Source of the DNA: Macrostomum lignano | Lineage: Eukaryota | Direction of reading: 5' to 3' | DNA length: 64,000 bases | NCBI GenBank assembly: GCA_002269645.1 | Contig: NIVC01002271.1 | Span: 124,103 to 188,102 of the forward strand | In this document: positions 20,226 through 61,200 of the stretch, in pieces | Numbering within the stretch: the first letter of the stretch is position 1 | How the letters are laid out: each line of letters begins with the position of its first letter | Notes under the pieces: model-generated | The model's database searches: none | Told to the model about the DNA's origin: nothing | Seen by the model: the letters and a program-made list of their open reading frames with translations, nothing else | Program-made: the position numbers and the translations under genes

Positions 20226-20248
20226 CCAGATATTGCATTTAATACAGT

Positions 20249-30476: not shown

Positions 30477-30477
30477 T

Positions 30478-30489
30478 TGGTGGCAGCGG
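30478..30489 (+). promoter_or_regulatory. Primer-binding site TGGTGGCAGCGG (complementary to a tRNA 3' end, likely tRNA-Leu)
   Basis: Begins with TGG right after the LTR end; tRNA identity from memory. Confidence 0.75.
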
Positions 30490-30494
30490 CGGCT

Positions 30495-31400
30495 ATGACT
30501 GAAAATGAAGGCAGTGCAGAGAGCCCTGCAGTGGCGGTGACTCAGCCCCAAGCTAGTTTTGTCAACATGTTTTTGCGGCCGCCTCAATACCAGCATGGAC
30601 AAGACTTTGAACTTTGGCTGGCGCGATTCAACAATTTCGCATCATCTCTTCCTGTGGATCAGCGCAAGAATGCTCTGCTGTCATTCCTCGACGACAAATC
30701 ATATCAAGCGGCCAGCAATTTGGATGCTGCCCTGTCCTACGACGACTTTGAGAAGGCTCTGAAAAATCGATTTCGGCCATCAACATCCTCTGCTGAGCTG
30801 CAGGCGCAGTTCTTCAATCTGACTCAAAAGGACGGTCAGTCGGTTGCAGACTATTCCGATGCCCTGATCGTTGCGGCAAAACGCGCTTTCCCGAGTCTGA
30901 TGGACACGAAAGCAGGTGCCGAGCAGGAGAAGTCGGTGACAGCGAAGGACGAGCTGCTCAAAGGTCGGTTTCTATCCGGATTGAGGGACCCAGCTGTGCG
31001 AATGCAGACGCAGATGCAGCCAAAGGCGACATTCGCTGATACAGTGGAAACAGCGCGATTCGTGGAATCGATCCAGTCGCAAGGAGGCACCGCTACGGCT
31101 CTAGCTGCTGAGATTCCCGAAGCCTTTGCAGTCGGAATTCAACGGTCTCTGAAGGAGCGGTCCAACAAGCTCAGCCGCTGGGAGTCAAAGGAACAGGATC
31201 ATCGTCAGAGCGGCGACAGACGCAGAGTCGTGACATGCTGGAAGTGCGGTAAGCCGGGCCATGTTCAAAGATTTTGCACTCAGAAGTCGGGAAACTTCGA
31301 TGGAGCGGCGACCGCTGGGGTGCCGTTCCGCAAGCGAGAATCCCGGCGCAACCAGTCGTGGAGGTGTCCTGCTCAGCCACTGGTGCCAACATGCTGGTAA
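30495..31400 (+). CDS. gag: Gypsy gag
   Basis: ATG just after the PBS; WLARFNNF capsid-like region, FLSGLRD, zinc knuckle CWKCGKPGHVQRFC. Confidence 0.85.
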   Translation: MTENEGSAESPAVAVTQPQASFVNMFLRPPQYQHGQDFELWLARFNNFASSLPVDQRKNALLSFLDDKSYQAASNLDAALSYDDFEKALKNRFRPSTSSAELQAQFFNLTQKDGQSVADYSDALIVAAKRAFPSLMDTKAGAEQEKSVTAKDELLKGRFLSGLRDPAVRMQTQMQPKATFADTVETARFVESIQSQGGTATALAAEIPEAFAVGIQRSLKERSNKLSRWESKEQDHRQSGDRRRVVTCWKCGKPGHVQRFCTQKSGNFDGAATAGVPFRKRESRRNQSWRCPAQPLVPTCW

Positions 31401-34400: not shown

Positions 34401-35085
34401 AGTCCACAAGTCGACTAGTCAGACACCTTCGGCGATGCATTTCGGCCGGGAACTGCGACTACCACTGGACTTGGCGTACGGAGGTCTGGCGCCGGATAGG
34501 CAACGTCCTTGTGAATGGGTGGCCGAGCTGCGGAGCCGGCTGCAGACATCGCACGAGAGGGCGCGACAAAACTTGGAGGCAGCGCAACTGCACCAGAAGG
34601 CAGCGTACGACAGGAGGTGCCACGGGGAGGCATTTAGCGAGGACGATCTGGTCTGGCTGCACAATCCGGCGCTGAAGCGAGGCGAGAGCCGAAAATTTCA
34701 TCGATGGTGGACTGGGCCATGGCGCGTTAAAAAGCAGATCTCAGACGTCACCTACCGCATTCAGCACGAGGCCAATGCACGACGGCGAAGGGTGGTGCAT
34801 TTCAATCGCCTGAAGCCATGCAACACGGCCAGTCCAGCTGCAGCACCTCAATTGCAACCAGCGGCGCAACTGCACAATCCTGACGAGGACGACCTGAGAT
34901 TTGACGGCGTCCCAGCCGGCGCCCCAGCCGGCGCCCCGGTCGGCGCCCCTGCTGATGTTCAAGCGCATCCAGAACAGCCTGTATTGCTTCGTAGTGAGAG
35001 GGCCCGTGCCCCGCCAGAATTTTTTGGTGAAGTGTACCGTATACTCATTGAATGCAGATTTTCTCAGATTTTTTTGAAACATTGA
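31274..35085 (+). pseudogene. pol: Gypsy pol (protease, RT, RNase H, integrase) with frameshifts and a deletion
   Basis: PR: LVDTGCS. RT: SSPVILVKKKDG, LDFTSGY, FFDDVVIF. RH: LDTDAS, RELLAIV, TDHASL, NADALS. IN: FSKWTEAF, VHTDQ, GGCERMN, WTGPWRV. Frame breaks near 33000, 33890 and 34060; HHCC region partly deleted. Confidence 0.9.
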
Positions 35086-40420: not shown

Positions 40421-40984
40421 GGAGCCAAAATTTTAGTGATAGTGTGCAGCAATAGTTTAAAATGATCCTTTTTGTTTTACAGAAAGAATTTTGTTTTACT
40501 GACGTAACTGGTATTTAAAGTATCTATGGATAAAATCATAAATACCTGGAATGAACAGAATCAAAGAGTTAACACGATAATAAAATACGGATGCAGTTGA
40601 CCGGGTCACCGAAAAATTCGGTTTTATAATTCATAGCTTATTGACTGTGTAACGAAATGTGTAATAGAATGATAGAATGATAAAATAGATCCATAAATAT
40701 TAGAGGACATGTACGTAGAAAATTAAAATACAATTACTAAAATCCTAATTTTATAAACGAAAAAAATTATGAATATCAATAGTCAATAAATCGATTTGGC
40801 AGGCAAGACATATAAAACGATCAACATTGGTTTACCTCCTATCAAAAGCAATAACTATTTTTGTGCTAAAAAAATGAAAATGAAAAAATGAAAAATGAAA
40901 GTGTTTTTTAGTAAAAAAAATTCCTCCTAAAATTTTCCAATACATTCTAAACCTAGTCTACTTAAGTAGTCCTTGTAAGGCAAG

Positions 40985-43900
40985 GAGACTCAGGTGCAGT
41001 GTGGGATGAAGACAGGAGATGCAGGTGCAGTGTGGGATGAAGACAGGAGATGCAGGTGCAGTGTGAGATGAAGACAGGAGATGCAGGTGCAGTGTGGGAT
41101 GAAGACAGGAGATGCAAGTGCAGTGTGGGATGAAGACAGGAGATGCAGGTGCAGTGTGGGATGAAGACAGGAGATGCAGGTGCAGTGTGGGATGAAGACA
41201 GGAGATGCAAGTGCAGTGTGAGATGAAGACAGGAGATGCAGGTGCAGTGTGGGATGAAGACAGGAGATGCAAGTGCAGTGTGGGATGAAGACAGGAGATG
41301 CAAGTGCAGTGTGGGATGAAGACAGGAGATGCAGGTGCAGTGTGGGATGAAGACAGGAGATGCAGGTGCAGTGTGGGATGAAGACAGGAGATGCAGGTGC
41401 AGTGTGAGATAGAGACAGGAGATGCAGGTGCAGTGTGAGATAGAGACAGACAGGAGATGCAAGTGCAGTGTGAGATAGAGACAGGAGATGCAGGTGCAGT
41501 GTGAGATCGAGACAGGAGATGCAAGTGCAGTGTAAGATCGAGACAGGAGATGCAGGTGCAGTGTGAAATGAAGACAGGAGATGCAAGTGCAGTGTGAGAT
41601 AGAGACAGGAGATGCAGGTGCAGTGTGAGATCGAGACAGGAGATGCAAGTGCAGTGTAAGATCGAGACAGGAGATGCAGGTGCAGTGTGAAATGAAGACA
41701 GGAGATGCAAGTGCAGTGTGAGATAGAGACAGGAGATGCAAGTGCAGTGTGAGATAGAGACAGGAGATGCAGGTACAGTGTGAGATAGAGACAGGAGATG
41801 CAGGTGCAGTGTGAGATAGAGACAGGAGATGCAGGTGCAGTGTGGGATGAAGACAGGAGATGCAAGTGCAGTGTGAGATAGAGACAGGAGATGCAAGTGC
41901 AGTGTGAGATAGAGACAGGAGATGCAGGTGCAGTGTGAGATAGAGACAGGAGATGCAAGTGCAGTGTGAGATAGAGACAGGAGATGCAAGTGCAGTGTGA
42001 GATAGAGACAGGAGATGCAAGTGCAGTGTGAGATAGAGACAGGAGATGCAGGTGCAGTGTGGGATGAAGACAGGAGATGCAGGTGCAGTGTGAGATAGAG
42101 ACAGGAGATGCAAGTGCAGTGTGAGATAGAGACAGGAGATGCAGGTACAGTGTGAAATGAAGACAGGAGATGCAGGTGCAGTGTGAGATAGAGACAGGAG
42201 ATGCAAGTGCAGTGTGAGATAGAGACAGGAGATGCAGGTGCAGTGTGAAATGAAGACAGGAGATGCAGGTGCAGTGTGAGATCGAGACAAGAGATGCAGA
42301 TGCAGTGTGAGATCGAGACAGTAGATGCAGGTGCAGTGTGGGATGAAGACAGGAGATGCAAGTGCAGTGTGAGATGAAGACAGGAGATGCAGGTGCAGTG
42401 TGGGATGAAGACAGGAGATGCAGGTGCAGTGTGGGATGAAGACAGGAGACTCAGGTGCAGTGTGAGATAGAGACAGGAGATGCAGGTGCAGTGTGGAATG
42501 AAGACAGGAGATGCAAGTGCAGTGTGAGATGAAGACAGGAGATGCAGGTGCAGTGTGGGATGAAGACAGGAGATGCAGGTGCAGTGTGGGATAGAGACAG
42601 GAGATGCAGGTGCAGTGTGGGATAGAGACAGGAGATGCAGGTGCAGTGTGGGATGAAGACAGGAGATGCAGGTGCAATGTGGGATGAAGACAGGAGACTC
42701 AGGTGCAGTGTGGGATGAAGACAGGAGATGCAAGTGCAGTGTGAGATAGAGACAGGAGACTCAGGTGCAGTGTGAGATAGAGACAGGAGACTCAGGTGCA
42801 ATGTGGGATGAAGACAGGAGACTCAGGTGCAGTGTGGGATGAAGACAGGAGATGCAAGTGCAGTGTGAGATGAAGACAGGAGATGCAGGTGCAGTGTGGG
42901 ATGAAGACAGGAGATGCAAGTGCAGTGTGGGATGAAGACAGGAGATGCAAGTGCAGTGTGGGATGAAGACAGGAGATGCAGGTGCAGTGTGGGATGAAGA
43001 CAGGAGATGCAGGTGCAGTGTGAGATAGAGACAGGAGATGCAGGTGCAGTGTGAGATAGAGACAGACAGGAGATGCAAGTGCAGTGTGAGATAGAGACAG
43101 GAGATGCAGGTGCAGTGTGAGATCGAGACAGGAGATGCAAGTGCAGTGTAAGATAGAGACAGGAGATGCAGGTACAGTGTGAGATAGAGACAGGAGATGC
43201 AAGTGCAGTGTGAGATCGAGACAGGAGATGCAAGTGCAGTGTGAGATAGAGACAGGAGATGCAAGTGCAGTGTGAGATAGAGACAGGAGATGCAAGTGCA
43301 GTGTGAGATAGAGACAGGAGATGCAAGTGCAGTGTGAGATAGAGACAGGAGATGCAGGTGCAGTGTGGGATGAAGACAGGAGATGCAGGTGCAGTGTGAG
43401 ATAGAGACAGGAGATGCAAGTGCAGTGTGAGATAGAGACAGGAGATGCAGGTACAGTGTGAGACAGAGACAGGAGATGCAGGTGCAGTGTGAGACAGAGA
43501 CAGGAGATGCAGGTGCAGTGTGAGATAGAGACAGGAGATGCAAGTGCAGTGTGAGATCGAGACAGGAGATGCAAGTGCAGTGTGAGATAGAGACAGGAGA
43601 TGCAGGTGCAGTGTGAGATCGAGACAGGAGATGCAGGTGCAGTGTGGGATGAAGACAGGAGATGCAGGTGCAGTGTGAGATAGAGACAGAAGATGCAAGT
43701 GCAGTGTGAGATCGAGACAGGAGATGCAAGTGCAGTGTGAGATAGAGACAGGAGATGCAAGTGCAGTGTGAGATAGAGACAGGAGATGCAAGTGCAGTGT
43801 GAGATAGAGACAGGAGATGCAAGTGCAGTGTGAGATAGAGACAGGAGATGCAGGTGCAGTGTGGGATGAAGACAGGAGATGCAGGTGCAGTGTGAGATAG

Positions 43901-44480
43901 AGACAGGAGATGCAAGTGCAGTGTGAGATAGAGACAGGAGATGCAGGTACAGTGTGAGACAGAGACAGGAGATGCAAGTGCAGTGTGAGATAGAGACAGG
44001 AGATGCAAGTGCAGTGTGAGATCGAGACAGGAGATGCAAGTGCAGTGTGAGATAGAGACAGGAGATGCAAGTGCAGTGTGAGATCGAGACAGGAGATGCA
44101 GGTGCAGTGTGAGATAGAGACAGGAGATGCAAGTGCAGTGTGAGATCGAGACAGGAGATGCAGATGCAGTGTGAGATAGAGACAGGAGATGCAAGTGCAG
44201 TGTAAGATAGAGACAGGAGATGCAGATGCAGTGTGAGATCGAGACAAGAGATGCAGGTGCAGTGTGAGATAGAGACAGGAGATGCAGGTACAGTGTGAAA
44301 TGAAGACAGGAGATGCAGGTGCAGTGTGAGATCGAGACAGGAGATGCAGGTGCAGTGTGAAATGAAGACAGGAGATGCAGGTGCAGTGTGAGATCGAGAC
44401 AAGAGATGCAGATGCAGTGTGAGATCGAGACAGTAGATGCAGGTGCAGTGTGAAATGAAGACAGGAGAGATGCAGATGCA
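40985..44480. repeat. 31-bp minisatellite (GACAGGAGATGCAGGTGCAGTGTGGGATGAA)n
   Basis: About 110 units; source of the SHTAPASPV ORFs. Confidence 0.97.
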
Positions 44481-44510
44481 GTGGTGCTGCTGGCGGTCCT
44501 TCAGGCTCCC

Positions 44511-46253
44511 TCAGTCCTGGACAAAGCGCAGCACTAGTGCTCCTTCAGGCTTGCTCTGCACCGTTGTCTGCCTTCGACACTGGCTCAGCTTTCGTCGTGG
44601 CAAGCTGCACAGTCCGGCGAACACTTTGCTGTAGATCGCCAGCATCTGCAGCTGCCGCGCCCGCATCAGGTAGTCGGTGTTGGGCGACACAACCGACAGT
44701 CGGTCAGACAGAAAAGCGATCAACACGTTGAAGAAGAACAGCACGAGAACAACCTGAATGAAGACGAGCGCAAGGCCGAGTCGTCTCAGAGAGTCGGCTG
44801 AGAAGCCCTCTCCGAGGATCACAGCTCGGTAGAATCCCAGCCAGAGACCAGTCGGCATCACATTGAAAGATTGCTGGAAAATTGGCTCGCACGGAATCAT
44901 TGCTGCGAACATCCAGGAGGCGTTGGCAAGCATCAGGCTGACCAGGACGAACAGCCAGCAGAGCATGTCCATCAGGCACCACATTTGGAAGAACATCCGA
45001 TCTAGCAGGCCAAGTTCGAAGAACACTGCAACCAGACCTAGCAGCATGCCAATGAGGAACATGGCATCAAGCACACCCATCAGACTGTTGGGCAGTTGAT
45101 GAAACTGACCGGTGCAAAACGTATTCGCTTGGATAGAGAGAGTAAAAGCAAAAGAAACTGGCCACAATGGAATTATTAGAGCTGGCGAGAACCATTTGAA
45201 ATCGGACAGGAACGTCTGCAAGAGTCGGACAATCGTACTTTTGTTCGTTGATGCAGCAACTTTCAGGATGTGAAATCTGGCAACAACAATGGCTATTTTA
45301 CGAATTAAGAAAACGGCACACAAAGTATAAACAAATATTTCCGGCACTGCAACTCCGCTGTCATTTTCCGAGTCACCGATGCTGTGTAACAGATCGTTAA
45401 ACTCGCAGCTGGTATTGCATTCCGTCCCGGATTTCACTTTGCGGTAAAATGTTGGCGCAGTGGTAATTCCGATACCGCACAGCAGCGCAATGCAAAACAC
45501 GGCGTTTATCCACAGCAGCTTTTTGTTTCGCGACAGAGTCTCAGCCGACCAGCGCGCGATGACGTCGGAGTCCCAGAAGCGCTTCAGCGAGTCGTCCAGC
45601 GGCTCCGCGTCCCGCGTCATGTCGGCCAGCATCGTCAGCGGACTCGTGTCTCGCCTGTCGCCCCTTGGGAAGCTGTACTCGCTGAGGTCCACACAGCGCA
45701 GTCTCACTGCTCCTGCATCAATCAGGCTGCTGCAGTACCTGCTGCTGCAGTGCAGAATCCAGTGAGCCACTGAGAACTGCCGCCTGTTCACTGCCAGCTC
45801 CAGCGCATTCAGTCCCAGCGCTTCCTTGTCCAACAGCTGGCACAGCTGCTCAGAGACCTGCTCATCGCTGCTGTGCAACTGCTGCAGAAAGCTCACAGCC
45901 TGCTGTTGGAGAGACTCACAATTCACAATCCACAGCTTGACGATGAGGCAGTGGACTGGGCAGCAGTCAGCATCCTTCATCACTTGCTGGCTTGTCGTCT
46001 CGAGCAGGTAGCGGAAGCAGTCGGGAGCCAGGCTGCAGCAGCTCAGCTCGATGAGAGACGTGTGCTGCGACAGGAGCTGGGCGAATGCGGCTCCGTCAGC
46101 GGAGCACGGGATGAAGTCGTGGGCGGCGTGAGGGAAGCTGAGCCGGTCAGATGCAGAGTCCCTGCTGCTCAGCAGCCTCTTCAGCGATGCCAAATCGTCC
46201 TTTTTCAAGATTTTTGAAATCCTGGAGTCACTGGAACCGGACTCTGGCGCCAT
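44511..46253 (-). CDS. Intronless divergent TRPV-like cation channel, 580 aa
   Basis: Ankyrin-like ALELAVNRRQFSVAHWIL; linker RCVDLSEY...SPLTML; six hydrophobic segments; S4-S5 MFFQMWCLMDMLCWLFV; pore region FYRAVILGEG; S6 FFFNVLIAFLSDR resembling LLLNMLIALMGET. Confidence 0.68.
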   Translation of the reverse strand: MAPESGSSDSRISKILKKDDLASLKRLLSSRDSASDRLSFPHAAHDFIPCSADGAAFAQLLSQHTSLIELSCCSLAPDCFRYLLETTSQQVMKDADCCPVHCLIVKLWIVNCESLQQQAVSFLQQLHSSDEQVSEQLCQLLDKEALGLNALELAVNRRQFSVAHWILHCSSRYCSSLIDAGAVRLRCVDLSEYSFPRGDRRDTSPLTMLADMTRDAEPLDDSLKRFWDSDVIARWSAETLSRNKKLLWINAVFCIALLCGIGITTAPTFYRKVKSGTECNTSCEFNDLLHSIGDSENDSGVAVPEIFVYTLCAVFLIRKIAIVVARFHILKVAASTNKSTIVRLLQTFLSDFKWFSPALIIPLWPVSFAFTLSIQANTFCTGQFHQLPNSLMGVLDAMFLIGMLLGLVAVFFELGLLDRMFFQMWCLMDMLCWLFVLVSLMLANASWMFAAMIPCEPIFQQSFNVMPTGLWLGFYRAVILGEGFSADSLRRLGLALVFIQVVLVLFFFNVLIAFLSDRLSVVSPNTDYLMRARQLQMLAIYSKVFAGLCSLPRRKLSQCRRQTTVQSKPEGALVLRFVQD

Positions 46254-46769
46254 TTTCTCTGCTGATGGAGTTCCGTCGGGTCAAATGGGAGTGGAGTATA
46301 GCCGTGGATTGGTGACAGACTAGTGCAGCTTCATCAATAAATAAGATGAGACACTGACTGGCATCCGTAACTGTTAGACCTCAGTATTGATTTTGTCTCC
46401 CAATATAAACGAAAAATTAACGCAGAATTGTTTGACTTATCATTACAGTTTTTAGTAGCCATGCAGGTTTTCTATTTGCTGTGCGAGCACACTGCAATTA
46501 AACAGCTTGATCTGATAATGTAAATTTTAGTATTTCAGTGTGTGATTGACAGTCAATTAAAACCTTATTTACCCAAGGTTTGCGAGCAAACAAATGCAGA
46601 CAGCTCAGGCTGGATGACCATAAAAGCATTAGCAAATTAATTTATCAGTTTGTTACTACATTAATCTGTAATTAATCATTTAATCTGTCTATGGCCAGAA
46701 TGCATCGAAACACTTGCGAACTTACAACCGTGTATAAGAAAGGTATGAGAGAAAGACTACTGCTGGCTA

Positions 46770-47089
46770 ATAATAAAAATAATTGATTACACCTTCCCCT
46801 ATTGGGCCAGATGTGCAACCGACAGCTCAGCCGCAGCTATTGCGTGGTGCATCTGAAGGCTGCGTACGGCTGTTCAGTCCAAGGACTGGGGGGGGGGGTC
46901 ACCACACACCCTCAATTACCCCAGCTAATGCTGGTGCACATTTTACAGCTGGGTGAACTGAAGCAATGCAGAGTTAAGTGTCTTGCTTAAGGACACAAAC
47001 TGTTCCGAGTTGGGATCGAGAAAGGAACCCCCGACCTTCAAGACGTGAGTCCGACGCTCTAGCCACTGGGCTAAAACCCCTGGGTTACA
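46770..47089 (-). mobile_element. tRNA-derived SINE with a CORE/Meta-like central domain
   Basis: On the minus strand: A-box TAGCCCAGTGG, interrupted B-box GGTTC...TCGATCCC, then GTGTCCTTAAGCAAGACACTTAAC...CACCCAGCTGTAAAATG, ATT-rich tail. Flanked by GGCTA (46765-69) and GACTA (47090-94); the paralogous locus near 50857 lacks it. Confidence 0.7.
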
Positions 47090-47923
47090 GACTAGCCGAT
47101 ATTAATAGTCTATGGCCAAAGCTGTTGATCCTGTCTGACTTTAACGACTCGCCAGCAGCCATCGAAACCAGTCCATGGCTTTCACCCAAGAAAATGGACA
47201 TTGCCATTGGAAGTATTGAGCTGGCAGATAGCGGATTTTTACTTAATATTTCTTGTTGCTAAGAAAGCTACACGATCTGACTTCTGATCTGAGTTTCTTT
47301 CACAGATTTGACAAGATTTTGCGAAAAGTATTTCAAGCTGTCGCCTGATATAACTTTTGGCGAACTTTTGGCCTGCCAATTTTTAAAACAAGCACAGGTT
47401 TTGCCTCGCATGCTGAATGGTAAAAATATAATAGCAACGAATAAGCTTGCTTCTGAAAAGTCACTGTGAAAAAGGAATAATGTTTTAAATCATTCTGATA
47501 GTTTAAACTGCTTTATAGATTACCTTGAAAAATCACTATCTGTAAAGTAATCAACTATCCCTGTAACGAAAATTACACTCGAAAATTCATGAAATTTAGA
47601 GTACTTTTTAAGCGACTTCAAATTCAGCAAATGAGTGATTTCATCTCAACTAATTCAAAGCATAATATACTACTAAACTAATTTCAAACTTTATAGTAGT
47701 CAAATTAGCATTTTCGAGTACAATAATGACACGTGTAGACGCAGAAACGCGTACTGCACGGTTCAGAATATTAATTTGATGGGGAATCTGGGTCAGGCCC
47801 AATGACAGCTTTTTCCTCTGTGAAAGCTGCTATAAAAACTGCGGAGAACTGCATGTGCTCACAGCTAGAAATATAAACCTTAACCGCTGACAAGAACTCC
47901 GCCACATCGCCACAGAACATATC

Positions 47924-48211
47924 ATGCCTGTCTACTCACGAAAGACCGCCATTGTATCGCGCGTTGTCATGGTAGCGGCATTCATTGGTTGCCTGTTTGT
48001 CCTAATTGCAACAACACAAACGGCGGAAGCTGCCATTGTCCGAGCAACCGAAGACTCCTATGCCGACCTCTTGGACGCCGGCGCTGGAGGATTCGATTTG
48101 AGAAGCAAACGCGGTCCCGAACTCATGATGCTGCGCTTGATGCAGTGCCGTTGGTACCGCAGTCACAACTGGGTTGCCCCTAAAGAAATGCACTGCTCTA
48201 AGCTTATCTAA
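47924..48211 (+). CDS. Secreted peptide precursor A (95 aa); predicted mature peptide GPELMMLRLMQCRWYRSHNWVAPKEMHCSKLI
   Basis: Hydrophobic signal-like N-terminus ending TAEA, acidic spacer, KR site, 32-aa peptide with C-x15-C. TATAAAA near 47831 and AATAAA downstream. Confidence 0.8.
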   Translation: MPVYSRKTAIVSRVVMVAAFIGCLFVLIATTQTAEAAIVRATEDSYADLLDAGAGGFDLRSKRGPELMMLRLMQCRWYRSHNWVAPKEMHCSKLI

Positions 48212-48384
48212 CTGAATCTAATTGTGGAACTCATGGCTTGTGAAACCGATTCTAAAATAAATCGAGAAAAATAAAAACTAATAAACCCGACATCAAATAG
48301 TTCAGAAAATAGTGAATTATAACTGAGAAATGTTTTTTGTGACTTTGTTTCTTATCATTCATATATTATATCTTAGCGAGTGGG

Positions 48385-50270
48385 TTCATGAGTGATTTAA
48401 TGAATGAGTTCATTAGTGTTTTCATGAGTGAGTTCATGAGTGATTTAATGAATGAGTTCATGAGTGTTTTCATGAAAGAGTTCATAGTGATTTAATGAAT
48501 GAGTTCATGAGAGATTTAATGAATGGGTTCATAAGTGAGTTCATGAGTGAGTTCATAAGTGATTTAATGAATGAGTTCATGAGAGATTTAATGAATGAGT
48601 TCATGAGTGATTTAATGAATGGGTTCATGAGAGATTTAATGAATGAGTTCATTAGTGATTTAATGAATGAGTTCATGAGTGATTTAATGAATGAGTTCAT
48701 GAGTGATTTAATGAATGAGTTCATTAGTGTTTTCATGAGTGAGTTCATGAGTGATTTAATGAATGAGTTCATGAGTGATTTAATGAAAGAGTTCATAGTG
48801 ATTTAATCAATGAGTTCATGAGAGATTTAATGAATGGGTTCATAAGTGAGTTCATGAGTGAGTTCATGAGTGAGTTCATAAGAGATTTAATGAATGAGTT
48901 CATGAGTGTTTTCATGAAAGAGTTCATGAGTGATTTAATGAATGAGTTCATGAGAGATTTAATGAATGAGTTCATGAGAGATTAAATGAATGAGTTCATG
49001 AGTGATTTAATGAATGAGTTCATGAGAGATTTAATGAATGGGTTCATGAGAGATTTAATGAATGAGTTCATTAGTGATTTAATGAATGAGTTCATGAGTG
49101 ATTTAATGAATGAGTTCATGAGTGATTTAATGAATGAGTTCATTAGTGTTTTCATGAGTGAGTTCATTAGTGTTTTCATGAGTGAGTTCATGAGTGATTT
49201 AATGAATGGGTTCATGAGTGATTTAATGAATGGGTTCATGAGTGATTTAATGAATGGGTTCATGAGTGATTTCATGAGTGAGTTCATGAGAGATTTAATG
49301 AATGAGTTCATGAGAGATTTAATGAATGGGTTCATGAGAGATTTAATGAATGGGTTCATAAGTGATTTCATGAGTGAGTTCATGAGTGATTTAATGAATA
49401 AGTTCATCAGTGTTTTCATGAGTGAGTTCATTAGTGTTTTCATGAGTGAGTTCATGAGTGATTTAATGAATGAGTTCATGAGAGATTTAATGAATGGGTT
49501 CATAAGTGATTTCATGAGTGAGTTCATGAGTGATTTAATGAATGAGTTCATGAGAGATTTAATGAATGAGTTCATGAGAGATTAAATGAATGAGTTCATG
49601 AGTGATTTAATGAATGAGTTCATGAGAGATTTAATGAATGGGTTCATGAGAGATTTAATGAATGAGTTCATGAGTGATTTAATGAATGGGTTCATGAGAG
49701 ATTTAATGAATGAGTTCATGAGTGATTTAATGAATGAGTTCATGAGAGATTTAATGAATGAGTTCATGAGTGATTTAATGAATGAGTTCATGAGTGATTT
49801 AATGAATGAGTTCATGAGTGATTTAATGAATGGGTTCATGAGAGATTTAATGAATGAGTTCATGAGAGATTTAATGAATGAGTTCATGAGTGATTTAATG
49901 AATGAGTTCATGAGTGATTTAATGAATGAGTTCATGAGTGATTTAATGAATGAGTTCATGAGAGATGTAATGAATGAGTTCATGAGTGATTTAATGAATG
50001 AGTTCATGAGAGATTTAATAAATGGGTTCATAAGTGATTTCATGAGTGAGTTCATGAGTGAGTTCATGAGTGATTTAATGAGTGAGTTCATGAGTGAGTT
50101 CATGAGTGATTTAATGAATGAGTTCATGAGTGATTTAATGAGTGAGTTCATGAGTGAGTTGATAAGTGATTTAATGAATAAGTTCATGAATTAGTTTATG
50201 AGTGAGTTGATTAGTGAGTGAGTTGATGAGTGATTTCATGAATGAGTGAGTGAGTGAGTGAGTCCATGAA
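48385..50270. repeat. 24-bp minisatellite (GAGTTCATGAGTGATTTAATGAAT)n between the two peptide genes
   Basis: About 75 units built from two 12-mers; source of the MNEFMSDL ORFs. Confidence 0.97.
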
Positions 50271-51073
50271 TGCGTTGGTGACAGAGTTCATGCGATGGAT
50301 ATATGCGATAGAACATGACACTAAAGCTGAGTGACTGCATGACTGGGCGAGATCGCGTGGGCGAGCACATGGTATTTAGGATGATTGCTAAAATGGAGAA
50401 TTAATTTTTCTTAGTCCTTTGAACGAGAATGGACTGACACAAGTGCATATGCGAGCCTACAAGTGCATAGAAACTGAAGCTTGGCGATGAGCAATGAAGC
50501 AAATATAACACGTGACAATTTTTCTGACACTTGAATAAAAGGTCAGGCATATGCGATTGCTGTCTCATCCAATTTTTTTTCTGTAGCTGTCGTCAAACAG
50601 TTTGATCTTCAGTCAATCAATCATGAACTGCTCTGAAAATAGACCCTCGATCCTACAGTTTTATGATTATTAACAATTGATAACTTGTCAAAGCTGCGCT
50701 AGCAAAGTCTCTAGAATGACAGAAATGGACTTTTATAATGATGAAATGAAACCTCAGTTTAGCAGCGAAGCCTAAAGAATCGAAAAAGTACATTAAGTTT
50801 TTAATTCAATCGCATACAAATGAGAGAGAGATAGAAGGACTAAACGACTGCTGCTGACTAGCCGATATGAATAGTCTATGGCCAAAGCTATTGATTCTGT
50901 CTGACTTTACCGACTAGTCCATGGCTTTCACCCCAGAGCGGTACAGTGCCGCTCGATGGCTCCACTATTTAAGCGAGCATCCAAGAGCGCTAAAAAGACA
51001 AAACCAACCAGTTAACTCCAAACACCTTTCATTATTCAACAAACAGACCGAGTATTACAGCATAGCAAGCATT

Positions 51074-51577
51074 ATGAAGTTCCAACTCGCATTGCCAATT
51101 GTCGCTCTGGTGCTAATCTCCACTGCTCTAATCTGCTCGGCTGCTTGGATACGGCCGCGCTCGGCTGCTGCATACGGGCCGCGCTCGGCTGCTCCGTTAA
51201 GGGGGCCGCGCTCGGCTGCTCCGTTAAGGGGGCCGCGCTCGGCTGCTGCATACGGGCCGCGCTCGGCTGCTCCGTTAAGGGGGCCGCGCTCGGCTGCTCC
51301 GTTAAGGGGGCCGCGCTCGGCTGCTCCGTTAAGGGGGCCGCGCTCGGCTGATATGGACGACGATTCTGAGCCTGATAACAACGTACTCTGCTGCGGTGCG
51401 ATCCCCAACCAAGGGCCAAGTGAGGACAGCTACTCAAACTACGTAGAAGAGTCTGTGGATTTTCAGGCGCCGGCTAAACGCGGACCGGAGAACATGTTAA
51501 TGCGCAAGTTTATCTGCGATTACTACAGGCATCACAACTGGAAACCGCCTGCCTATCTGAAGTGTCACCAAATGTGA
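51074..51577 (+). CDS. Secreted peptide precursor B (167 aa) with repeated SAAPLRGPR/SAAAYGPR units; predicted mature peptide GPENMLMRKFICDYYRHHNWKPPAYLKCHQM
   Basis: Signal-like MKFQLALPIVALVLISTALICSA; seven in-frame repeats; acidic spacer; KR site; C-x15-C peptide aligned without gaps to precursor A; AATAAA near 51659. Confidence 0.85.
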   Translation: MKFQLALPIVALVLISTALICSAAWIRPRSAAAYGPRSAAPLRGPRSAAPLRGPRSAAAYGPRSAAPLRGPRSAAPLRGPRSAAPLRGPRSADMDDDSEPDNNVLCCGAIPNQGPSEDSYSNYVEESVDFQAPAKRGPENMLMRKFICDYYRHHNWKPPAYLKCHQM

Positions 51578-52514
51578 GGTGGCGGCGATGACTGCCGCGA
51601 TAAAAGCCCGTTAAACACTGTAGTTATTGGGCGATAATGAGCACAACACTGCTACATAAATAAATTCAAACCAGAAATTTCGATCTAACAAGTCTCAAAA
51701 TATTTTCGATCTGCTTCCGTTCTTGCTTTTTTTATAGCCTGAGAGTGGCGAAAACTGAAACTGAATGACCTAATTCATCACAATATCGAAGGTACACGCG
51801 CTTGACTTCTGTTGAACATTTGTATACGCCCTGATCTTCAGTCTATGATGCTATATTATACATGCCGAAAGAAAATATTGTATCTGAGACAAAATTGGCT
51901 TTAATTTGTCAACACAAGCGAACATTTTTTTAACGCGCGTATATCGATGCTGATTGATTTGCTTGCTTTCGCTATAAAGTTGAATGCACGCTTTAACCAA
52001 TTTGGAAGGCCTAATTACGTTGTTTAAAGTTGAAATCTCCTCTGGAGAAAATGCAGAAACGACCGCGTCTTCTCAAAACCAGTTTCCGTAGTGATGCCTC
52101 TACCAGATCCACTACGTCAACCAGATTGTTTACTACGAGTATTAAGGACTACTAGCTGTCTTGAGTTTTACTTTAATTTACTTTGCGCCCCTTCATGAAG
52201 CCTATGCAATGGACAGATCCATTACATGACGTTTGGACGGTCCCAAATCAGCACATTTGAACAGATTTTACCTCGATGCCAAGATTGAGTGCATAGACTA
52301 GCAATGCATTGGTTAATTTGCATAGCCATAGCCATATCTATGTTTATATGATAAAATATATTATTGTCCATGGTCCAATTACGCTTGCACAACTGTGGAA
52401 AGAATTAATTAATTGTGCACCCGATTTCTTAACTTAGGACCACATTTGGACCATAGACAATGAGAAGCAAATCTTCTTTTAAAAAGAATCACCATACAAA
52501 ACATAACAGTTGCG

Positions 52515-52885
52515 TCATGTCAACCATAAAAGAATCGCCATGCCAACCATAAAAGAATCGCTATGTCAACTATAAAAGAATCGCTATGTCAACTATAAAA
52601 GAATCGCCATGCCAACCATAAAATAATCGCCATGCCAACTATAAAAGAATCGCCATGCCAACTATAAAAGAATCGCTATGTCAACCATAAAAGAATCGCT
52701 ATGTCAACCATAAAAGAATCGCCATGCCAACCATAAAAGAATCGCCATGCCAACCATAAAAGAATCGCCATGTCAACCATAAAAGAATCGCCATGTCAAC
52801 CATAAAAGACTCGCTATGTCAACTATAAAAGAATCGCCATGTCAACCATAAAAGAATCGCTATGTCAACTATAAAAAAATCGCCG
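52515..52885. repeat. 23-bp minisatellite (AAAAGAATCGCCATGCCAACCAT)n
   Basis: About 16 units. Confidence 0.93.
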
Positions 52886-53721: not shown

Positions 53722-54145
53722 AACTGAAGGATCAGGGAGGGTAACTGAAGGATCAGGGAGGGTAACTAAAGGATCAGGGAGGGTAACTGAAGGATCAGGG
53801 AGGGTAACTGAAGGATCAGGGAGGGTAACTGAAGGATCAGGGAGGGTAACTAAAGGATCAGGGAGGGTAACTGAAGGATCAGGGAGGGTAACTGAAGGAT
53901 CAGGGAGGGTAACTGAAGGATCAGGGAGGGTAACTGAAGGATCAGGGAGGGTAACTGAAGGATCAGGAACGGGTAAAAGGGGGGCATAACTGAAGGATCA
54001 GGCAGGGTAGCAGGTGTCATAACTGAAGGATCAGGGAGGGTAGCAGGTGTCATAACTGAAGGATCAGGGAGGGTAGCAGGTGTCATAACTGAAGGATCAG
54101 GGAGGGTAGCAGGTGTCATAACTGAAGGATCAGGGAGGGTAGCAG
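53722..54145. repeat. 21-bp minisatellite (AACTGAAGGATCAGGGAGGGT)n switching to a 33-bp variant
   Basis: About 11 short units, then about 5 units extended by AGCAGGTGTCAT. Confidence 0.93.
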
Positions 54146-54684
54146 GATTTAGAGTACATCAAATATAAAAGCGGCCTGACTTTCACAAATATTAGACTTT
54201 ATTCAGCAGGTACAGAAAAAGCAGAACTGGATAAGAAAAAAGCAACAGCTATCAAATGAAAAAAGTTAATTACAGAAGAAAATGATTTCATATCTGAAAA
54301 GCTACATGCTTCTAAATAAATTTACAACATCAACTCAACCAACATGTTGAAGTTGGCATCCCGAAACCACTGGTCAAGAAGTGGCGGCAATAATCCAAAT
54401 CTAGCCATTGTTCTCTAGTCTAAAGCCAGGTGTCTCATGACGCAAATTGCATCACCTAAGATAAAAACCGAATTGCGTCACCTAGGGCTGAGGTCTGAGA
54501 AGAGTTACTTGACCACTGATTTCGGGGTTGGGAACTTTAACCTGTTGCTGAGTGCAGATATGAAGAAGAATTGCTGAATTCCCAACCGACGTACTGTACA
54601 ATATTAGACAACAGTTTAACAAAAACTCGTATGAGACAGAAATAGATATTATGTACATTTCCTCTTTAAAGTGGCGGACACAAT

Positions 54685-55192
54685 CTGAGACACACAGAGG
54701 TCAGTGGCGGGCACAAACTCAAACACACGGAGGTCAGTGGCGGACACAAACTCAAACACACGAAGGTCAGTGGCGGACACAAACTCAAACACACGGAGGT
54801 CAGTGGCGGACACAAACTCAAACACACGGAGGTCAGTGGCGGACACAAACTCAAACACACGAAGGTCAGTGGCGGACACAAACTCAAACACACGGAGGTC
54901 AGTGGCGGACACAAACTCAAACACACGAAGGTCAGTGGCGGACACAAACTCAGACACACGGAGGTCAGTGGCGGACACAAACTCAAACACACGAAGGTCA
55001 GTGGCGGACACAAACTCAAACACACGAAGGTCAGTGGCGGACACAAACTCAAACACACGGAGGTCAGTGGCGGACACAAACTCAAACACACGGAGGTCAG
55101 TGGTGGACACAAACTCAGACACACGGAGGTCAGTGGCGGACACAAACTCAAACACACGGAGGTCAGTGGCGGACACAAACTCAAACACACGG
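54685..55192. repeat. 33-bp minisatellite (GGTCAGTGGCGGACACAAACTCAAACACACGGA)n
   Basis: About 15 units; open in several frames on both strands. Confidence 0.95.
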
Positions 55193-55268: not shown

Positions 55269-58200
55269 TCAAAGGAAGGCAACGGCCTCTTCGCCTTCAG
55301 TGTCAACTTTGGAATTATAAGACTTTCTCCGTGGTCGCTTTCGTGCACCTTGTTGTCGAGGGCATCGACTACCGGAGCTTGCCGCACCAGAGGCAGCGGC
55401 GCCGTCATCCGTGTCGGCTTGTCGACGATTGACAGTTGAGGTTGTCGGCGGCTCGGTCGTGGACGCCGAGGCAGCAAGGGCCGCATGACGGCAGAGAAGT
55501 GGATCCAGCTGCGCGGTAGATAAATAGATAGAGAAGCTATTCTTAGTATATATGGTTTGTAGGCTAATGATTGCTCTAAACTGTAGGCTAATGATTGCTC
55601 TAAACTGTAGGCTAATGATTGCTCTAAACTGTAGGCTAATGATTGCTCTAAATTGTAGGCTAATGATTGCAATAAACTGTAGGCTGATGATTGCTCTAAA
55701 CTGTAGGCTAATGATTGCTCTAAACTGTAGGCTAATGATTGCTCTAAACTGTAGGCTAATGATTGCTCTAAACTGTAGGCTAATGATTGCTCTAAACTGT
55801 AGGCTAATGATTGCTCTAAACTGTAGGCTAATGATTGCTCTAAATTGTAGGCTAATGATTGCAATAAACTGTAGGCTAATTCTAGCAGTTTCCCACCTTA
55901 GTCAGCTGTTTATTAAATTTAACGCAGGCCGGTTGGCGTTGACAGAATCTCCTGATGCCAATGTAAACAAAAACGGTAAGAACCGGCGCGCCAGACAGCA
56001 GACAGCCGACAGCAATTAACAGAGCGCCTTCACTGCTGCTACTACTGGCAGTAACATGAGTGTTAGACCAAGAGGAATGAGAATACGCCAGACACGATGA
56101 CGCAATCGCCGCAGCGGCTAAAACAGCCAACATAGTTGATAACAAAACGCTATAAATGATTACAGCGGACTTTTGATGCCGGCTAATAGTTTTTCGCTTT
56201 TTGATCGGCTGTAGCAGAGCTCGGACGGACAATCCCAGACCGGCCAAACCAACCAGCGCAACCAGTCCGCGCAACGAGGCCAGCAAAGCAAAATTGAAAC
56301 TAGACGTGGTTGCTAAGCTAAAGCAGAAGACCAGCGCAAGCACTGCAACACCTGCTAAGGTTAACAGGCAGCCAAGTAGCAGGGACAGAAAGCACGAAGG
56401 TTGAGGCGGTTGTTTCTGAGCAACTAAATTAGCTGCTAAGGTGAACTCGGCCACCGAGCCAATTAGCGGCCAGCCAATCAATCCGCATAGCAACGGCATA
56501 GCAACGCCAGTTAGCGACAAAGCCAGGTGCAAACCGCCAATTCTGACGCTGGTCGATTCCGAATCAGCCGAGAGTCGGCGAAGCCAGCAGACGGCGGATT
56601 CGACTAGCAGCAGGACGGCGGCGCCGGCCCCGGCAAACACGGCGCCAGCGTGACCGGCAATTCCGGCGTGGCTAACCGCTCCGCTGCCGGTTAGCAACGG
56701 TTGCCATGGTAGCCAGACGAGACTACTACTACGATTGCTAGTAGTATGAGAAGACGAATAATTTCCTGTGTCATTATTAACTGCGACAATAGCATCTGTT
56801 TCTGGCATGCCGACAATGGTTGCTATGATGAGCACGGTTACCATAGCAACCGTCCAGGCAACAAGTTTGCCGAGAAGTTTTCGAACAGACGCATCAATCA
56901 AATCAAACTGACGGCACGAGTGGCGCAATTGAGTTGCCAAGGCGACCACTGCGAAGCAGACCAGAGAAACGGCGGGAGAATCCAAAGACCCAATGGTCCA
57001 CGATAGCAACAGCATTCCAGTGAATCCCCTAGCAACGCGCTGGGAACAGCTGTAATGCTGTACAAGCAATTCGACGGCGCCAAAAGCAGACAGCCTGCAG
57101 ACCAGATAGCGCAATAAAAGCAGCACAATGGCCGGAATGTGGTCCAGTTTTGGCCCAGCCCAACCGCTAGTGATGCAATTGCAGCTTCAATTGTTAGCGC
57201 CGCAGATGACGGTCCCAGTACAATAGCTAGCCTGTTGCCATAGCAACCGGGCGGGAACAGGACGGAGACTAGCAACTGGGCTAGTCCGGCAGTAAGCACC
57301 GCCAACCCAGCCCCAATGCCTCGCCGATAACCGGCCAATGGAGCAAAAACTGAAGCCCCCGCTGCTGACCAAACCAATAAGCAAATTGAGAATAGACTCA
57401 ACAATTTTACAAGTTGCCATTTTCCAAGCTGACGGATACTTCTATCGGCAGTAGTGCTGTCAGTAGTAGATTTCCTACAGATGCGTTGAATATCGGTTAG
57501 CAGTCCAACAGGTTTAGTCTGGCTAGCTTTATCCATTGATGAAGAACAATCCAACAGTTCAACAGCAGTTGGCATCTGTTCCACTGCAATCAGCTCCGCT
57601 ACCGCTTCGCTAGGCCACACAGCCGGAGGCGAAGGCATCAGCACGGCCGAGTCTAAGAAAGCGTGCAAACTTTGCACCAGTTCGCGCCTCGGCCGCCTTC
57701 TGCCAGCCAGTCTGGCCAACTGTGGCTGCTGCATTTGTTGATCAATGTCGCGCAGCTGACGCCGGAATTCCGCATCGCCGCATAGGCAGGCAAACAGGCG
57801 ACCGACTTGGCGACAGCTGGTTAGAAACAGGCAGCGGACTGGTAGACTGCCGGTCAGTGTGGGCCACGGCATTGGCGAACGGAGATGGCAGAGCAGCAGC
57901 ACAGATTGCTGGCTAGTCAGATCCGGCAGGTTCTCTGCCACTAGCACTAGAATGGCTTCACTAGCAGTTATTGGTGTTGCCGGGCCCCGCCTGACAAAAC
58001 TTCCATTGCCAAGCAGTTTCAAAGCTTCGGCAACAGTGCCTGGACTATCCAAGGTGGCCTGCGCCGATGACAGAAGCGGCTCCAGACGGCATACGTTAAC
58101 TAGATAATTGACAAATCTAGATTCGGCGTTATCTTCCACGTCCGCATCGACATCGGTGGTTAAAACTGGTGGTATATCGACGCCTAACCGTAGCGAGCCA

Positions 58201-61200
58201 ACCTCCAAGTGCTGACGGAATTGTACAATAGCGTGAAATTGCAGCACGGCAGACATTGGCTTGGACCAGTGGCTGTCCTGCCCACATCCATCATCTTCAT
58301 CGCTGTCGTTGTCAGTTGAGTCGTCTGTAGCATCTGAGTCTTTGTTCAATATAATTCTTCTCTCGTATTGACCAGACCAACGAGAGGTTTCTAGCCAATA
58401 GAAATCAGTCAGCTGAGTTGCCTGCTCCTGGCTTGGGGTGAGCTCGTAAGTGAGCACCTGGGTCTGGAGAGACACGGGTTCAGGATTCTTTAGCAAACTC
58501 TTCTGATAATCTGCCTGTCCGCTCCTTCCTCAGTCCCTGAATCTGCCTCTCCGCTCCTTCCTCAGTCCCTGAATCTGCCTCTCCGACACCTTCCTCAGCC
58601 CCTGAATCTGCCTCTCCGCCCTTCCTCAGCCCCTAAATCTGCCTCTCCGCCCCTTCCTCAGTCCCCGAATCTGCCTCTCCGCCCTTCCTCAGCCCCTAAA
58701 TCTGCCTCTCCGCCCTTTCCTCAGTCCCCGAATCTGCCTCTCCGCCCCTTCCTCAGTCCCTGAAACTGCCTCTCCGCCCCTTCCTCAGCCCTTGAATCTG
58801 CCTCTCCGCTCCTTCCTCAGTCCCTGAATCTGCCTCTCCGCTCCTTCCTCAGTCCCTGAATCTGCCTCTCCGCCCCTTCCTCAGTCCCTGAATCTGCCTC
58901 TCCGCCCGTTCCTCAGCCCCAGAATCTGCCTCTCCGCCCTTCCTCAGCCCCTAAATCTGCCTCTCCGCCCCTTCCTCAGCCCCTGAATCTGCCTCTCCGC
59001 CCCTTCCTCAGCCCCTGAATCTGCCTCTCCGCCCCTTCCTCAGCCCCTAAATCTGCCTCTCCGCCCCTTCCTCAGTCCCCGAATCCGCCTCTCCGCCCCT
59101 TCCTCAGTCCCCGAATCCGCCTCTCCGCTATCTCTCAGTCCCTGAATCTGCCTCCAGCACAGATATAATCGAGCACAAACAAACCTCAGGTAGCGCAGGA
59201 GCAGGCGACCCAGGCTCATCAAAATCTTCATCCTCAACCGATAGCTGCTGGCGCAGGTCTCCAGTGTCCTGCACGCTGTCAACAGTGGCCGAAGATGCAG
59301 ACGCTGGCGTCAGCAGAGCCGGCTCCGATCTGCACCCAAATCCGTGAGCATCAGCTGGCCTACTGGTGCCGCCAGCAGACGAGAAGCAGCGCTGCACGGA
59401 GGCCGAGCAAGCCAATGCCGGGCTGATCTTATGCCGGCGCATTGCGTGCAGATCGTCAAATCTGTGACTTTTCACATTGTCCTGGTCCAGCTCGCCCAGC
59501 TGCGAAGCCTCCTCAGGGTCTAAGAAAAACTCCTCCATTAGAATCTCGTTGCCGGAGAATGTGCGCCTGGCGAGGTCCAGCGGTGTGTAGCAATCTGACC
59601 GCTGCTGGTGCTGCTGGGATGAAGCTCTTCGACGGTGATGATGCTGCTGATGCTGGACTTCGGAAGCTGATTCAGCATCTGAGGATTGGGGTAAATATAA
59701 ATCTATAGGAATCCTGTAGATTTGGGACTGGAAATCCTGTAGATTTGGGATTGGGAATCTTGCAGATTTGGGATTGGGAATCCTGTAGATTTGGGGATCA
59801 GGAATCCTGTAGATTTGGGAGTGGGAATCCTGTAGATTTGGGACTGGAAATCCTGTAGATTTGGGATTGGAAATCCTGTAGATCTGAGGAATCGGGAATC
59901 CTGTAGATTTGGGACTGGAAATCCTGTAGATTTGGGATTGGAAATCCTGTAGATTTGAGGAATCGGGAATCCTGTAGATTTGGGATTGGAAATCCTGTAG
60001 ATTTGGGATTGGGAATCCTGTAGATTTGGGAGTGGGAATCCTGTAGATTTGGGATTGGAAATCCTGTAGATTTGGGACTGGAAATCCTGTAGATTTGGGA
60101 TTGGAAATCCTGTAGATTTGGGACTGGAAATCCTGTAGATTTGGGATTGGGAATCTTGCAGATTTGGGATTGGGAATCCTGTAGATTTGGGACTGGAAAT
60201 CCTGTAGATTTGGGATTGGAAATCCTGTAGATTTGAGGAATCGGGAATCCTGTAGATTTGGGGATCAGGAATCCTGTAGATTTGGGGATCAGGAATCCTG
60301 TAGATTTGGGGATCAGGAATCCTGTAGATTTGGGAGTGGAAATCCTGTAGATTTGGGATTGGGAATCTTGTAGATTTGGGGAACGGGAATCCTGTAGATT
60401 TGGGGATCAGGAATCCTGTAGATTTGGGATTGGGAATCCTGTAGATTTGGGATTGGGAATCCTGTAGATTTGGGGATCGGGAATCCTGTAGATTTGGGAT
60501 TGGGAATCCTGTAGATTTGGGATTGGAAATCCTGTAGATTTGGGATTGGGAATCCTGTAGATTTGGGATTGGGAATCCTGTAGACTCGGGATTGGAAATC
60601 CTGTAGATTTGAGGAATCGGGAATCCTGTAGATTTGGGATTGGAAATTCTGTAGATTTGGGATTGGGAATCCTGTAGATTTGGGATTGGAAATTCTGTAG
60701 ATTTGGGATTGGGAATCCTGTAGATTTGGGATTGGGAATCCTGTAGATTTGGGATTGGGAATCCTGTAGACTCGGGATTGGAAATCCTGTAGATTTGAGG
60801 AATCGGGAATCCTGTAGATTTGGGATTGGAAATTCTGTAGATTTGGGATTGGGAATCCTGTAGATTTGGGGATCGGGAATCCTGTAGATTTGGGACTGGG
60901 AATCCTGTAGATTTGGGATTGGGAATCCTGTAGATTTGGAATCATGAATCATGAATTATGGACTTGGGATGTGGGATCAGGGAATCCTCATAGGCTTGAG
61001 ATGTGGGATCAGGGAATCCCTATAGGCTTGGGATGTGGGATCAGGGAATCCCCATAGGCTTGGGATGTGGGATCAGGGAATCCTCATAGGCTTGAGATGT
61101 GGGATCAGGGAATCCCTATAGGCTTGGGATGTGGGATCAGGGAATCCCCATAGGCTTGAGATGTGGGATCAGGGAATCCCCATAGGCTTGGGATGTGGGA

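Follow-up and report, generated by a model that had tools for sequence, protein, structure and literature searches.

A family of predicted secreted disulfide-ring propeptides in Macrostomum lignano, one of whose genes is part of a deletion-generated fusion

Here we report a family of genes from the flatworm Macrostomum lignano that are predicted to encode secreted propeptides, each ending in a peptide with two cysteines that could close a disulfide ring. Two of these genes lie in tandem in the window, by which we mean the whole 64,000-nucleotide stretch analysed (contig NIVC01002271.1 of assembly GCA_002269645.1, positions 124,103 to 188,102 of the forward strand; locus L004), and a third paralog was recovered from another locus. 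The family is new and of a familiar kind, a small prepropeptide predicted to yield a C-terminal disulfide-cyclised peptide; judged from the searches described below, it appears to be undescribed and, provisionally, to be known only from M. lignano. The chances seem about even that its products are secreted cyclic peptides released by furin or another proprotein convertase (PC), most likely to serve as signalling peptides. Further, the second gene in the window is a chimera in which a deletion has joined an unrelated secreted repeat gene in frame to a member of the family.

Both open reading frames (ORFs) that a first-pass annotation of the window had singled out lie on the + strand where it placed them, as judged from the ORF list and by reading the sequence. 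Gene 1 (47924-48211) is a single exon encoding precursor A, a 95-residue protein laid out as MPVYSRKTAIVSRVVMVAAFIGCLFVLIATTQTAEA, then AIVRATEDSYADLLDAGAGGFDLRS, then KR, then GPELMMLRLMQCRWYRSHNWVAPKEMHCSKLI. A TATAAAA box, read in the sequence at 47831-47837, stands 87 nt upstream of its ATG. The signal peptide (47924-48031), with a hydrophobic core of Kyte-Doolittle (KD) value 3.0 and predicted cleavage after AEA, is followed by an acidic propeptide (48032-48106; isoelectric point (pI) 4.05), the KR part of a furin-type RSKR site (48107-48112), the predicted mature peptide (48113-48208; pI 9.39) and the stop codon (48209-48211). The first AATAAA polyadenylation signal lies at 48256-48261, and further AATAAA hexamers follow from 48270 and from 48280. 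The second ORF runs from 50921 to 51577. Its likely start is the methionine of MKFQ at 51074, giving a product of 167 residues, and the part upstream is an in-frame 5′ leader. It ends in VDFQAPA, a KR site (51476-51481), the predicted mature peptide GPENMLMRKFICDYYRHHNWKPPAYLKCHQM (51482-51574) and a stop codon (51575-51577), with an AATAAA signal at 51659-51664. Signal peptides were judged throughout from hydrophobic cores and cleavage motifs.

The two C-terminal peptides, A and B, are as the first-pass annotation had quoted them: they align without gaps, both have 15 residues between their cysteines (C-x15-C), and no amidation Gly precedes either stop codon. The alignment, which takes in the KR site and the two residues preceding it, has 36 columns, of which 15 are invariant. 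The similarity lies well outside chance: a tblastn search of the whole window with one peptide region returned the other at E = 3e-9 to 3e-10, and local alignments among peptides A and B and that of the third paralog, C, scored 10-16 standard deviations above shuffled sequences.

The third paralog came from a full HMMER search of 1.84 billion representative proteins with a profile of the two mature peptides. Apart from one spurious match to a repeat protein (P0006), this search returned M. lignano proteins only. Paralog C (BOX15_Mlig013743g1/g3; P0007/P0008), retrieved at E = 6.7e-4, lies on other contigs and reads MQRLNGSLLIALVFTMALCIATLDA, then a stretch ending in AASETYLMRQRPDSESPAAALLS, then RKRR, then GPENVLMRAYQCNLYRKQGKKPPPSLKC and the stop codon. 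It follows the same plan as A and B, with a signal peptide, a basic site, GPE as the first residues of the peptide and a cysteine spacing of exactly 15 residues, and GGCTATAAAT is found ∼36-43 nt upstream of its annotated transcript start. Because the profile recovered a precursor at another locus with the same architecture and ring size, the family is real.

Comparison of A, B and C gives the signature [KR]R-GPE-x3-R-x3-C-x2-YR-x6-P-x4-C, in which the three residues after GPE are mostly Met or Leu. The motif YRxHNW, which had been put forward as the mark of the family, turns out to be a subfamily feature, HNW being common to A and B only and not kept in C. The earlier statement that conservation is concentrated after the KR site holds insofar as the invariant columns of the three paralogs cluster between the basic site and the second cysteine; it needs the qualification that a weak [ST]E[DT][ST]Y motif is also conserved in the propeptides (TEDSY, SEDSY and SETY).

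Word-indexed searches of 5.8 billion proteins matched M. lignano copies only. None of the 100 matches from a scan of JGI metagenome contigs with a degenerate pattern was confirmed, and exact-sequence look-ups aimed at transcript contigs (Logan) placed relatives on NCBI genome contigs only, the window proteins being absent from the collection. No described family was matched in Pfam, in the sequences of the PDB, in a panel of known cyclic peptides or by string searches of the literature and its supplements, in agreement with the first-pass annotation, which had recognised none. The same annotation had proposed that the family is lineage-specific. Every relative found is indeed from M. lignano, and this restriction is provisional because the transcriptomes of other macrostomids are outside the libraries searched.

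We next turn to the precursor B gene, whose structure in the window differs from that on two other contigs carrying the same region. The two genes had been described as secreted, intronless precursors with dissimilar pro-regions, each ending in KR and a peptide. The secreted, intronless and KR-peptide parts of this description stand; gene 2, for its part, owes its N-terminal two thirds to another gene. On both NIVC01001454.1 (loci L001, L002 and L007) and NIVC01001453.1 (loci L005 and L006), there are two separate genes where the window has gene 2. The upstream one, gene X (P0003/P0004, 175-193 residues; L002 12285-12812, L005 10001-10582), encodes an MKFQ signal peptide followed by a variable number (4-7) of tandem GPRSAAPLRG/GPRSAAAY units and an acidic stretch; its C-terminal tail runs from DNNV and DFIGGINAALDAAG to ATMDIATGNIEPADDSD and ends in DSD before the stop codon. 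The gene has AATAAA signals of its own, and no Pfam family was found for it. The unfused precursor B gene (P0005, BOX15_Mlig018005g1/g2; 86 residues) lies 2.9-5 kb downstream of gene X, with a TATA-like CTATATACA ∼65 nt upstream of its ATG, and encodes MATIMAKSNAIDSKFLLLASAIVLCCGA, then IPNQGPSEDSY, and finally KR-GPENML at the start of the peptide.

In the window, gene X survives as 51074-51384, its 3′ end deleted. The chimeric coding sequence (51074-51577) begins with the gene X-derived signal peptide (51074-51145) and repeats (51153-51350), followed by the acidic stretch to 51384; from 51385 it derives from precursor B (LCCGAIPNQGPSEDSY onwards). The junction, AACAACGT|ACTCTGC at 51379-51384, contains a 3-bp CGT microhomology that is present in both parental sequences. 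Window 41045-51384 is collinear with L005 56-10422 (96.6% identity), window 51379-52792 matches L005 15621-17034 (98.7%), and the two sides of the junction also match L002 at 12652 and 15807, so that the window is shorter by 5.2 kb than L005 and by 3.15 kb than L002. The converse explanation, that a transposon insertion split gene 2 on the other contigs, was rejected in favor of a deletion in the window because on two contigs both parental genes are complete, down to separate starts, signal peptides, TATA-like elements, stop codons and polyadenylation signals, and because the unfused N terminus resembles that of gene 1: the part of A before KR is weakly similar to unfused B (z = 3.0, including EDSY) and not to the fused N terminus (z = 0.8). 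A deletion is also the economical explanation, since under an insertion the upstream gene would have had to gain a stop codon and polyadenylation signal and the downstream gene a promoter, ATG and signal peptide. Overall, gene 2 in the window is a chimera produced by a 3.2-5.2-kb deletion and represents a derived allele or homeolog. Most of its dissimilar pro-region is foreign sequence because the deletion fused an unrelated secreted repeat gene to precursor B in frame. After the fusion, peptide B would be preceded by a signal peptide of foreign origin and a pro-region rich in repeats.

Both gene types are represented by transcript-derived models. The closest proteins are M. lignano "hypothetical proteins" of the same assembly, namely BOX15_Mlig033203g1/g2 for gene 1 (99% identity) and BOX15_Mlig026277g1 (P0002) for gene 2. 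The gene 1 copy in the window has no GenBank annotation of its own; it is 100% identical to the copy on NIVC01001453.1 and 99% identical to the annotated copies on NIVC01001454.1 (P0001). The P0002 model is annotated on the window's own contig and spans the fusion junction. It begins at HYLSEHP (50963), so that a TATA-like TATTTAA at 50966-50972, upstream of the gene 2 coding sequence, lies inside the transcript model and its role is uncertain. Compared with the genome, the model (615-nt span, 178 residues) is short of one 78-nt repeat block, which fits a de novo transcript with collapsed repeats that was mapped back to the genome. The M. lignano annotation, the source of the models for A, B and C, is not ab initio: it rests on transcripts assembled from RNA-seq, their ends supported by experiment, and novel genome-guided transcripts below 0.5 reads per kilobase per million (RPKM) without overlap to an earlier de novo assembly were discarded (PMC5730564). 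We therefore take it that transcripts exist for both gene types. Neither the peptide strings nor the locus tags or accessions occurred in the literature searched, and the family gene identifiers were not found in the searched portions of the supplements of PMC5816591, PMC7336406 and PMC12896417.

The assembled copies carry a record of recent selection. The copies of paralog C differ at 4 positions in 294 nt, all synonymous, and their flanks are 92-96.5% identical. Those of gene 1 differ by 2 synonymous changes inside the mature peptide and 1 non-synonymous change in the signal peptide (G22S), and those of the gene 2 peptide part by 1 synonymous change. In total, 7 synonymous changes stand against 1 non-synonymous change (p ∼4e-4, taking roughly one random coding change in four to be synonymous). 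Because such a ratio would otherwise be very unlikely, the result indicates recent purifying selection on the copies. Between paralogs, the ratio of non-synonymous to synonymous divergence (dN/dS) is 0.3-0.7 over 30 peptide codons, with dS saturated (0.8-1.5).

All three precursors show the sequence part of the operational definition of a prohormone or neuropeptide precursor: a signal peptide, a basic site for cleavage and a clustering of the conserved residues within the predicted peptide. The hydrophobic N-terminal cores of A, B and C have KD values of 2.9-3.0 and are followed by small-residue -3/-1 cleavage motifs (AEA, SAA and LDA). A and B have acidic propeptides (pI about 4) and C a nearly neutral one (pI 6.2); the C-terminal peptides, of 28-32 residues, are basic (pI 9.2-9.8, net charge +3 to +5). 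With 2 Da taken off the reduced masses, their predicted disulfide forms would weigh on average about 3943.8 Da (A), 3906.6 Da (B) and 3217.8 Da (C). These peptides are also hydrophilic, with a grand average of hydropathy (GRAVY) of -0.4 to -1.0, and their helical hydrophobic moment is low (0.27-0.45). The cleavage sites read RSKR in A, AKR in B (a plain KR) and RKRR in C, and those of A and C fit the furin consensus R-X-K/R-R. A proline at position 2, as in the GPE start of these peptides, commonly shields bioactive peptides from aminopeptidases. An AlphaFold run on a shallow alignment of 4 sequences, with a mean predicted local distance difference test (pLDDT) score of 65, predicted a helix over PELMMLRLMQCRWYRS (precursor A residues 65-80) and then a loop back to the second cysteine; block-mean pLDDT reached 77-83 across the ring and the later half of the helix, with lower values where the helix begins.

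Taken together, these features suggest the following course. The precursor would enter the secretory pathway with cleavage of its signal peptide, and its two cysteines, 15 residues apart, would close a 17-residue disulfide ring. A convertase of the furin or PC type could then cut after KR or RR and free a non-amidated peptide of 28-32 residues, which would begin with Gly-Pro-Glu and continue as a Met/Leu-rich helix into the ring C-x2-Y-R ... P ... C. The cyclic peptide would be the active product, most probably an intercellular signal, that is, a neuropeptide or peptide hormone acting on a putative receptor. M. lignano has a pc2 homolog (RNA815_2403.2), an essential gene with expression in the nervous system (PMC4490696). 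We prefer this neuropeptide or hormone reading and give it a probability that is close to even or somewhat short of it.

Several points weigh against a signalling role. Both cleavages, the disulfide and the role itself are predictions made from sequence, and the AlphaFold model has a low overall confidence. Furin-type sites serve the constitutive pathway of any cell and are no pointer to neurons. No orthologs outside M. lignano came up in the searches, so that the sequences offer no deep conservation that would argue for a core signalling function, and the paralogs have diverged quickly, between-paralog dN/dS being otherwise uninformative on account of the saturated dS. Further, the locus is structurally unstable, with a tandem duplication and a gene fusion, and adjoins a secreted repeat gene, all of which is as typical of gland, reproductive or defence secretions as of neuropeptides. 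Much of this evidence would also suit exocrine or effector products. Glands (those of the seminal fluid or prostate, or adhesive, rhabdite or pharyngeal glands) could secrete them, or they could be cationic peptides with a defence or antimicrobial role, shed to the outside or passed to a mate. This explanation, which we hold to be possible though doubtful, draws on the restriction of the family so far to one lineage, the rapid divergence of the paralogs, a copy number and structure that vary through an 8.5-kb tandem duplication and a gene fusion, the adjacent gene X, the positive charge of the peptides, processing sites that are independent of the neuroendocrine PC2 and the fact that one-disulfide loops are known among seminal and antimicrobial peptides. 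It sits less well with the hydropathy and hydrophobic moment of the peptides, which are atypical of membrane-active antimicrobial peptides, with Pfam scans in which neither BRICHOS nor another antimicrobial-precursor domain was found, and with selection on the recent copies that is purifying and not diversifying. In addition, the family identifiers are absent from the full list of ∼190 reproduction-related transcripts annotated by in situ hybridisation (antrum, gonads and prostate) in PMC7336406, an absence that speaks weakly against a prostate or antrum product, as versions of the identifiers may differ.

It is improbable, in our estimation, that the KR/RR site is unused and the products are intact small secreted proteins, or that the window copies, especially the chimeric gene 2, are decaying and functionless. 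Cleavage is indeed predicted from the residues alone, the pro-region of gene 2 carries two extra cysteines (LCCGA) left from a former signal peptide, and gene 1 lacks an annotation on this contig. However, conservation in three paralogs is concentrated exactly between the basic site and the second cysteine, the sites of A and C match the furin consensus in full, and the 7:1 excess of synonymous changes, the 99-100% identity of gene 1 with its copies on the other two contigs and the transcript model across the fusion also count against these readings. A third alternative, a highly diverged flatworm member of the MCH-, somatostatin/allatostatin-C- or natriuretic-type families, we regard as very improbable. 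The precursor plan, a C-terminal, non-amidated cyclic peptide after a dibasic site, resembles that of the MCH and somatostatin types (PMC4772807), the ring is of natriuretic size and peptide A shows a short resemblance to human MCH; nevertheless, Pfam matches, alignments and ring motifs all fail to connect the family to any of these hormones, as detailed below.

The surroundings of the two genes are very rich in repeats. Between them lies a 24-bp satellite of ∼76 copies (48384-50247), in which long ORFs on both strands are repeat artefacts. Upstream of gene 1, an internally deleted remnant of gene X (47090-47229, + strand) joins its 5′ flank to the 3′ end of its coding sequence: 47090-47191 is 93-95% identical to 50856-50937, and 47193-47229 is 86% identical to L002 12764-12800 by blastn, with tblastn in agreement. 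On NIVC01001454.1 (L001/L002), gene 1, the satellite and gene X form a block that occurs twice in tandem, the gene 1 copies lying 8,488 bp apart, and the copy number of the locus thus varies among the assembled homeologs or haplotypes. In the 3′ untranslated region of gene 1, an indel of ∼30 bp just before the first AATAAA (window 48258; L001 ∼10335) separates the window and L005 copies from those on NIVC01001454.1. Downstream of gene 2 are four further satellites, at 52516-52884 (23 bp), 53722-54146 (21/33), 54670-55192 (33) and 55558-55880 (24).

Farther upstream, a 31-bp tandem array of ∼3.5 kb (∼40930-44483; also L005 1-3497) shows a strong skew of G over C and artefactual minus-strand ORFs. 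Beside it, an uninterrupted 580-residue ORF with an ATG start (44511-46253, - strand) has several long hydrophobic segments in its C-terminal half and resembles a membrane or channel protein, and it matched no Pfam family at E ≤ 1e-3. Two retroelements lie on the + strand. One (18648-23987) contains an ORF for reverse transcriptase and RNase H (21450-23987), and the other (30405-35085) is Ty3/gypsy-like, with gag/zinc knuckle, aspartyl protease, reverse transcriptase, RNase H and integrase. On the - strand, 56898-58496 and the sequence beyond it hold exons of a large gene (product of at least 964 residues) with a weak match to the Band 3/anion-exchanger cytoplasmic domain; this gene is the conserved downstream neighbor on all three contigs.

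If the peptides are processed and active, an undescribed cyclic-peptide family would join the signalling or secretory repertoire of M. lignano, a species in which transgenesis, RNA interference and live imaging make the study of a ligand through to its function practical. The signature GPE-helix-C-x2-YR-...-P-...-C lends itself to searches of the ∼100 Macrostomum transcriptomes available and to the synthesis of peptides for receptor de-orphanisation. The fusion is a small natural case of a prohormone gaining a signal peptide and pro-region by microhomology-mediated deletion in a recently polyploidised genome. Current views are not overturned, as orphan, lineage-restricted prohormone-like genes are common in flatworms; what is added here is a third paralog, a corrected signature, evidence of purifying selection and the recognition of gene 2 as a deletion-generated fusion.

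We compared the family with known peptides by several routes. Nothing relevant was found in Pfam at E ≤ 10 for the two window precursors, P0005, P0007 or the three mature peptides, and a profile of the three peptides matched no PDB sequence at E ≤ 10. Alignment with 17 known peptides that are cyclic or have one disulfide gave 51 comparisons, the best of them at a shuffle p of 0.03. Like pro-MCH and the starfish ArMCHP (88 residues with a 28-residue C-terminal peptide), the precursors are small and carry a non-amidated, one-disulfide peptide after a dibasic site, and their peptides of 28-32 residues are comparable in length with the ambulacrarian forms (PMC4772807). MCH-type peptides are defined by a C-terminal location, 8 (vertebrate) or 10 (ambulacrarian) residues between the cysteines, Met or Ile after the first cysteine and a basic residue two before the second (PMC4772807). 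Of these features, only the C-terminal location is shared: all three paralogs have 15 residues between the cysteines, R, D or N after the first and M, L or L two before the second. The short local resemblance of peptide A to human MCH (MLRLMQCRWYR versus MLRCMLGRVYR) has a shuffle p of 0.06 and leaves the cysteines out of register, and with no Pfam Pro-MCH match and a different ring, we rejected an MCH-type assignment.

The natriuretic peptides ANP, BNP and CNP likewise have a C-terminal C-x15-C ring, and CNP-22 ends at its second cysteine. The present peptides share this ring size (17-membered) and the C-terminal, non-amidated position, and paralog C also ends at the second cysteine. However, the natriuretic consensus C-F-G-x3-D-R-I-x3-S-x-L-G-C is absent from the rings, which read RWYRSHNWVAPKEMH, DYYRHHNWKPPAYLK and NLYRKQGKKPPPSLK, and the conserved features of the family are its own: an N-terminal GPE and, within the ring, YR (positions 3-4) and Pro (position 11). 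A natriuretic relationship was rejected, as ring size is the sole match, no Pfam ANP match was found and alignments with ANP, BNP and CNP were no better than shuffles. It seems scarcely probable that the peptides are a protostome counterpart of the MCH-type or natriuretic hormones, which are regarded as confined to deuterostomes, and that they act on an orphan flatworm receptor, their sequence having diverged beyond detection while the plan of the precursor and the geometry of the ring were kept. Drosophila sex peptide (seminal), the annelid arenicin and thanatin (both antimicrobial) are also peptides with a single C-terminal disulfide loop. The present family resembles them as short cationic single-loop peptides cut from a precursor, and the sequence similarity is not above chance. 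From BRICHOS and other antimicrobial precursors it differs in having no such Pfam domain and in its hydrophilic, weakly amphipathic peptides. A somatostatin/allatostatin-C type was also rejected, as the 15-residue ring has neither CxxxFxxxxxxC (10 residues; PMC4772807) nor C-YFNPIS-C (6 residues) and the alignments are at chance.

Closer in kind are the orphan prohormones of planarians. In Schmidtea mediterranea, 19 orphan "spp" prohormone genes have been described, among them the tandemly expanded Planarin family; they are restricted to flatworms and multiplied through local duplications. Their precursors are cut at basic sites, expression is seen in neurons as well as in other cell types, and the peptides have been validated by mass spectrometry and in situ hybridisation (PMC2953531). 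No sequence link between the two groups came to light: the profile search of 1.84 billion proteins returned no planarian protein, and a string test of the 8 supplementary files of PMC2953531, with their peptide and prohormone tables, did not find KRGPE, RRGPE, RGPEN, HNW or KRGP. Nonetheless, as flatworm orphan prohormones with local expansion, the planarian spp genes are the nearest analogues in kind of the M. lignano family, which is known here from its sequence.

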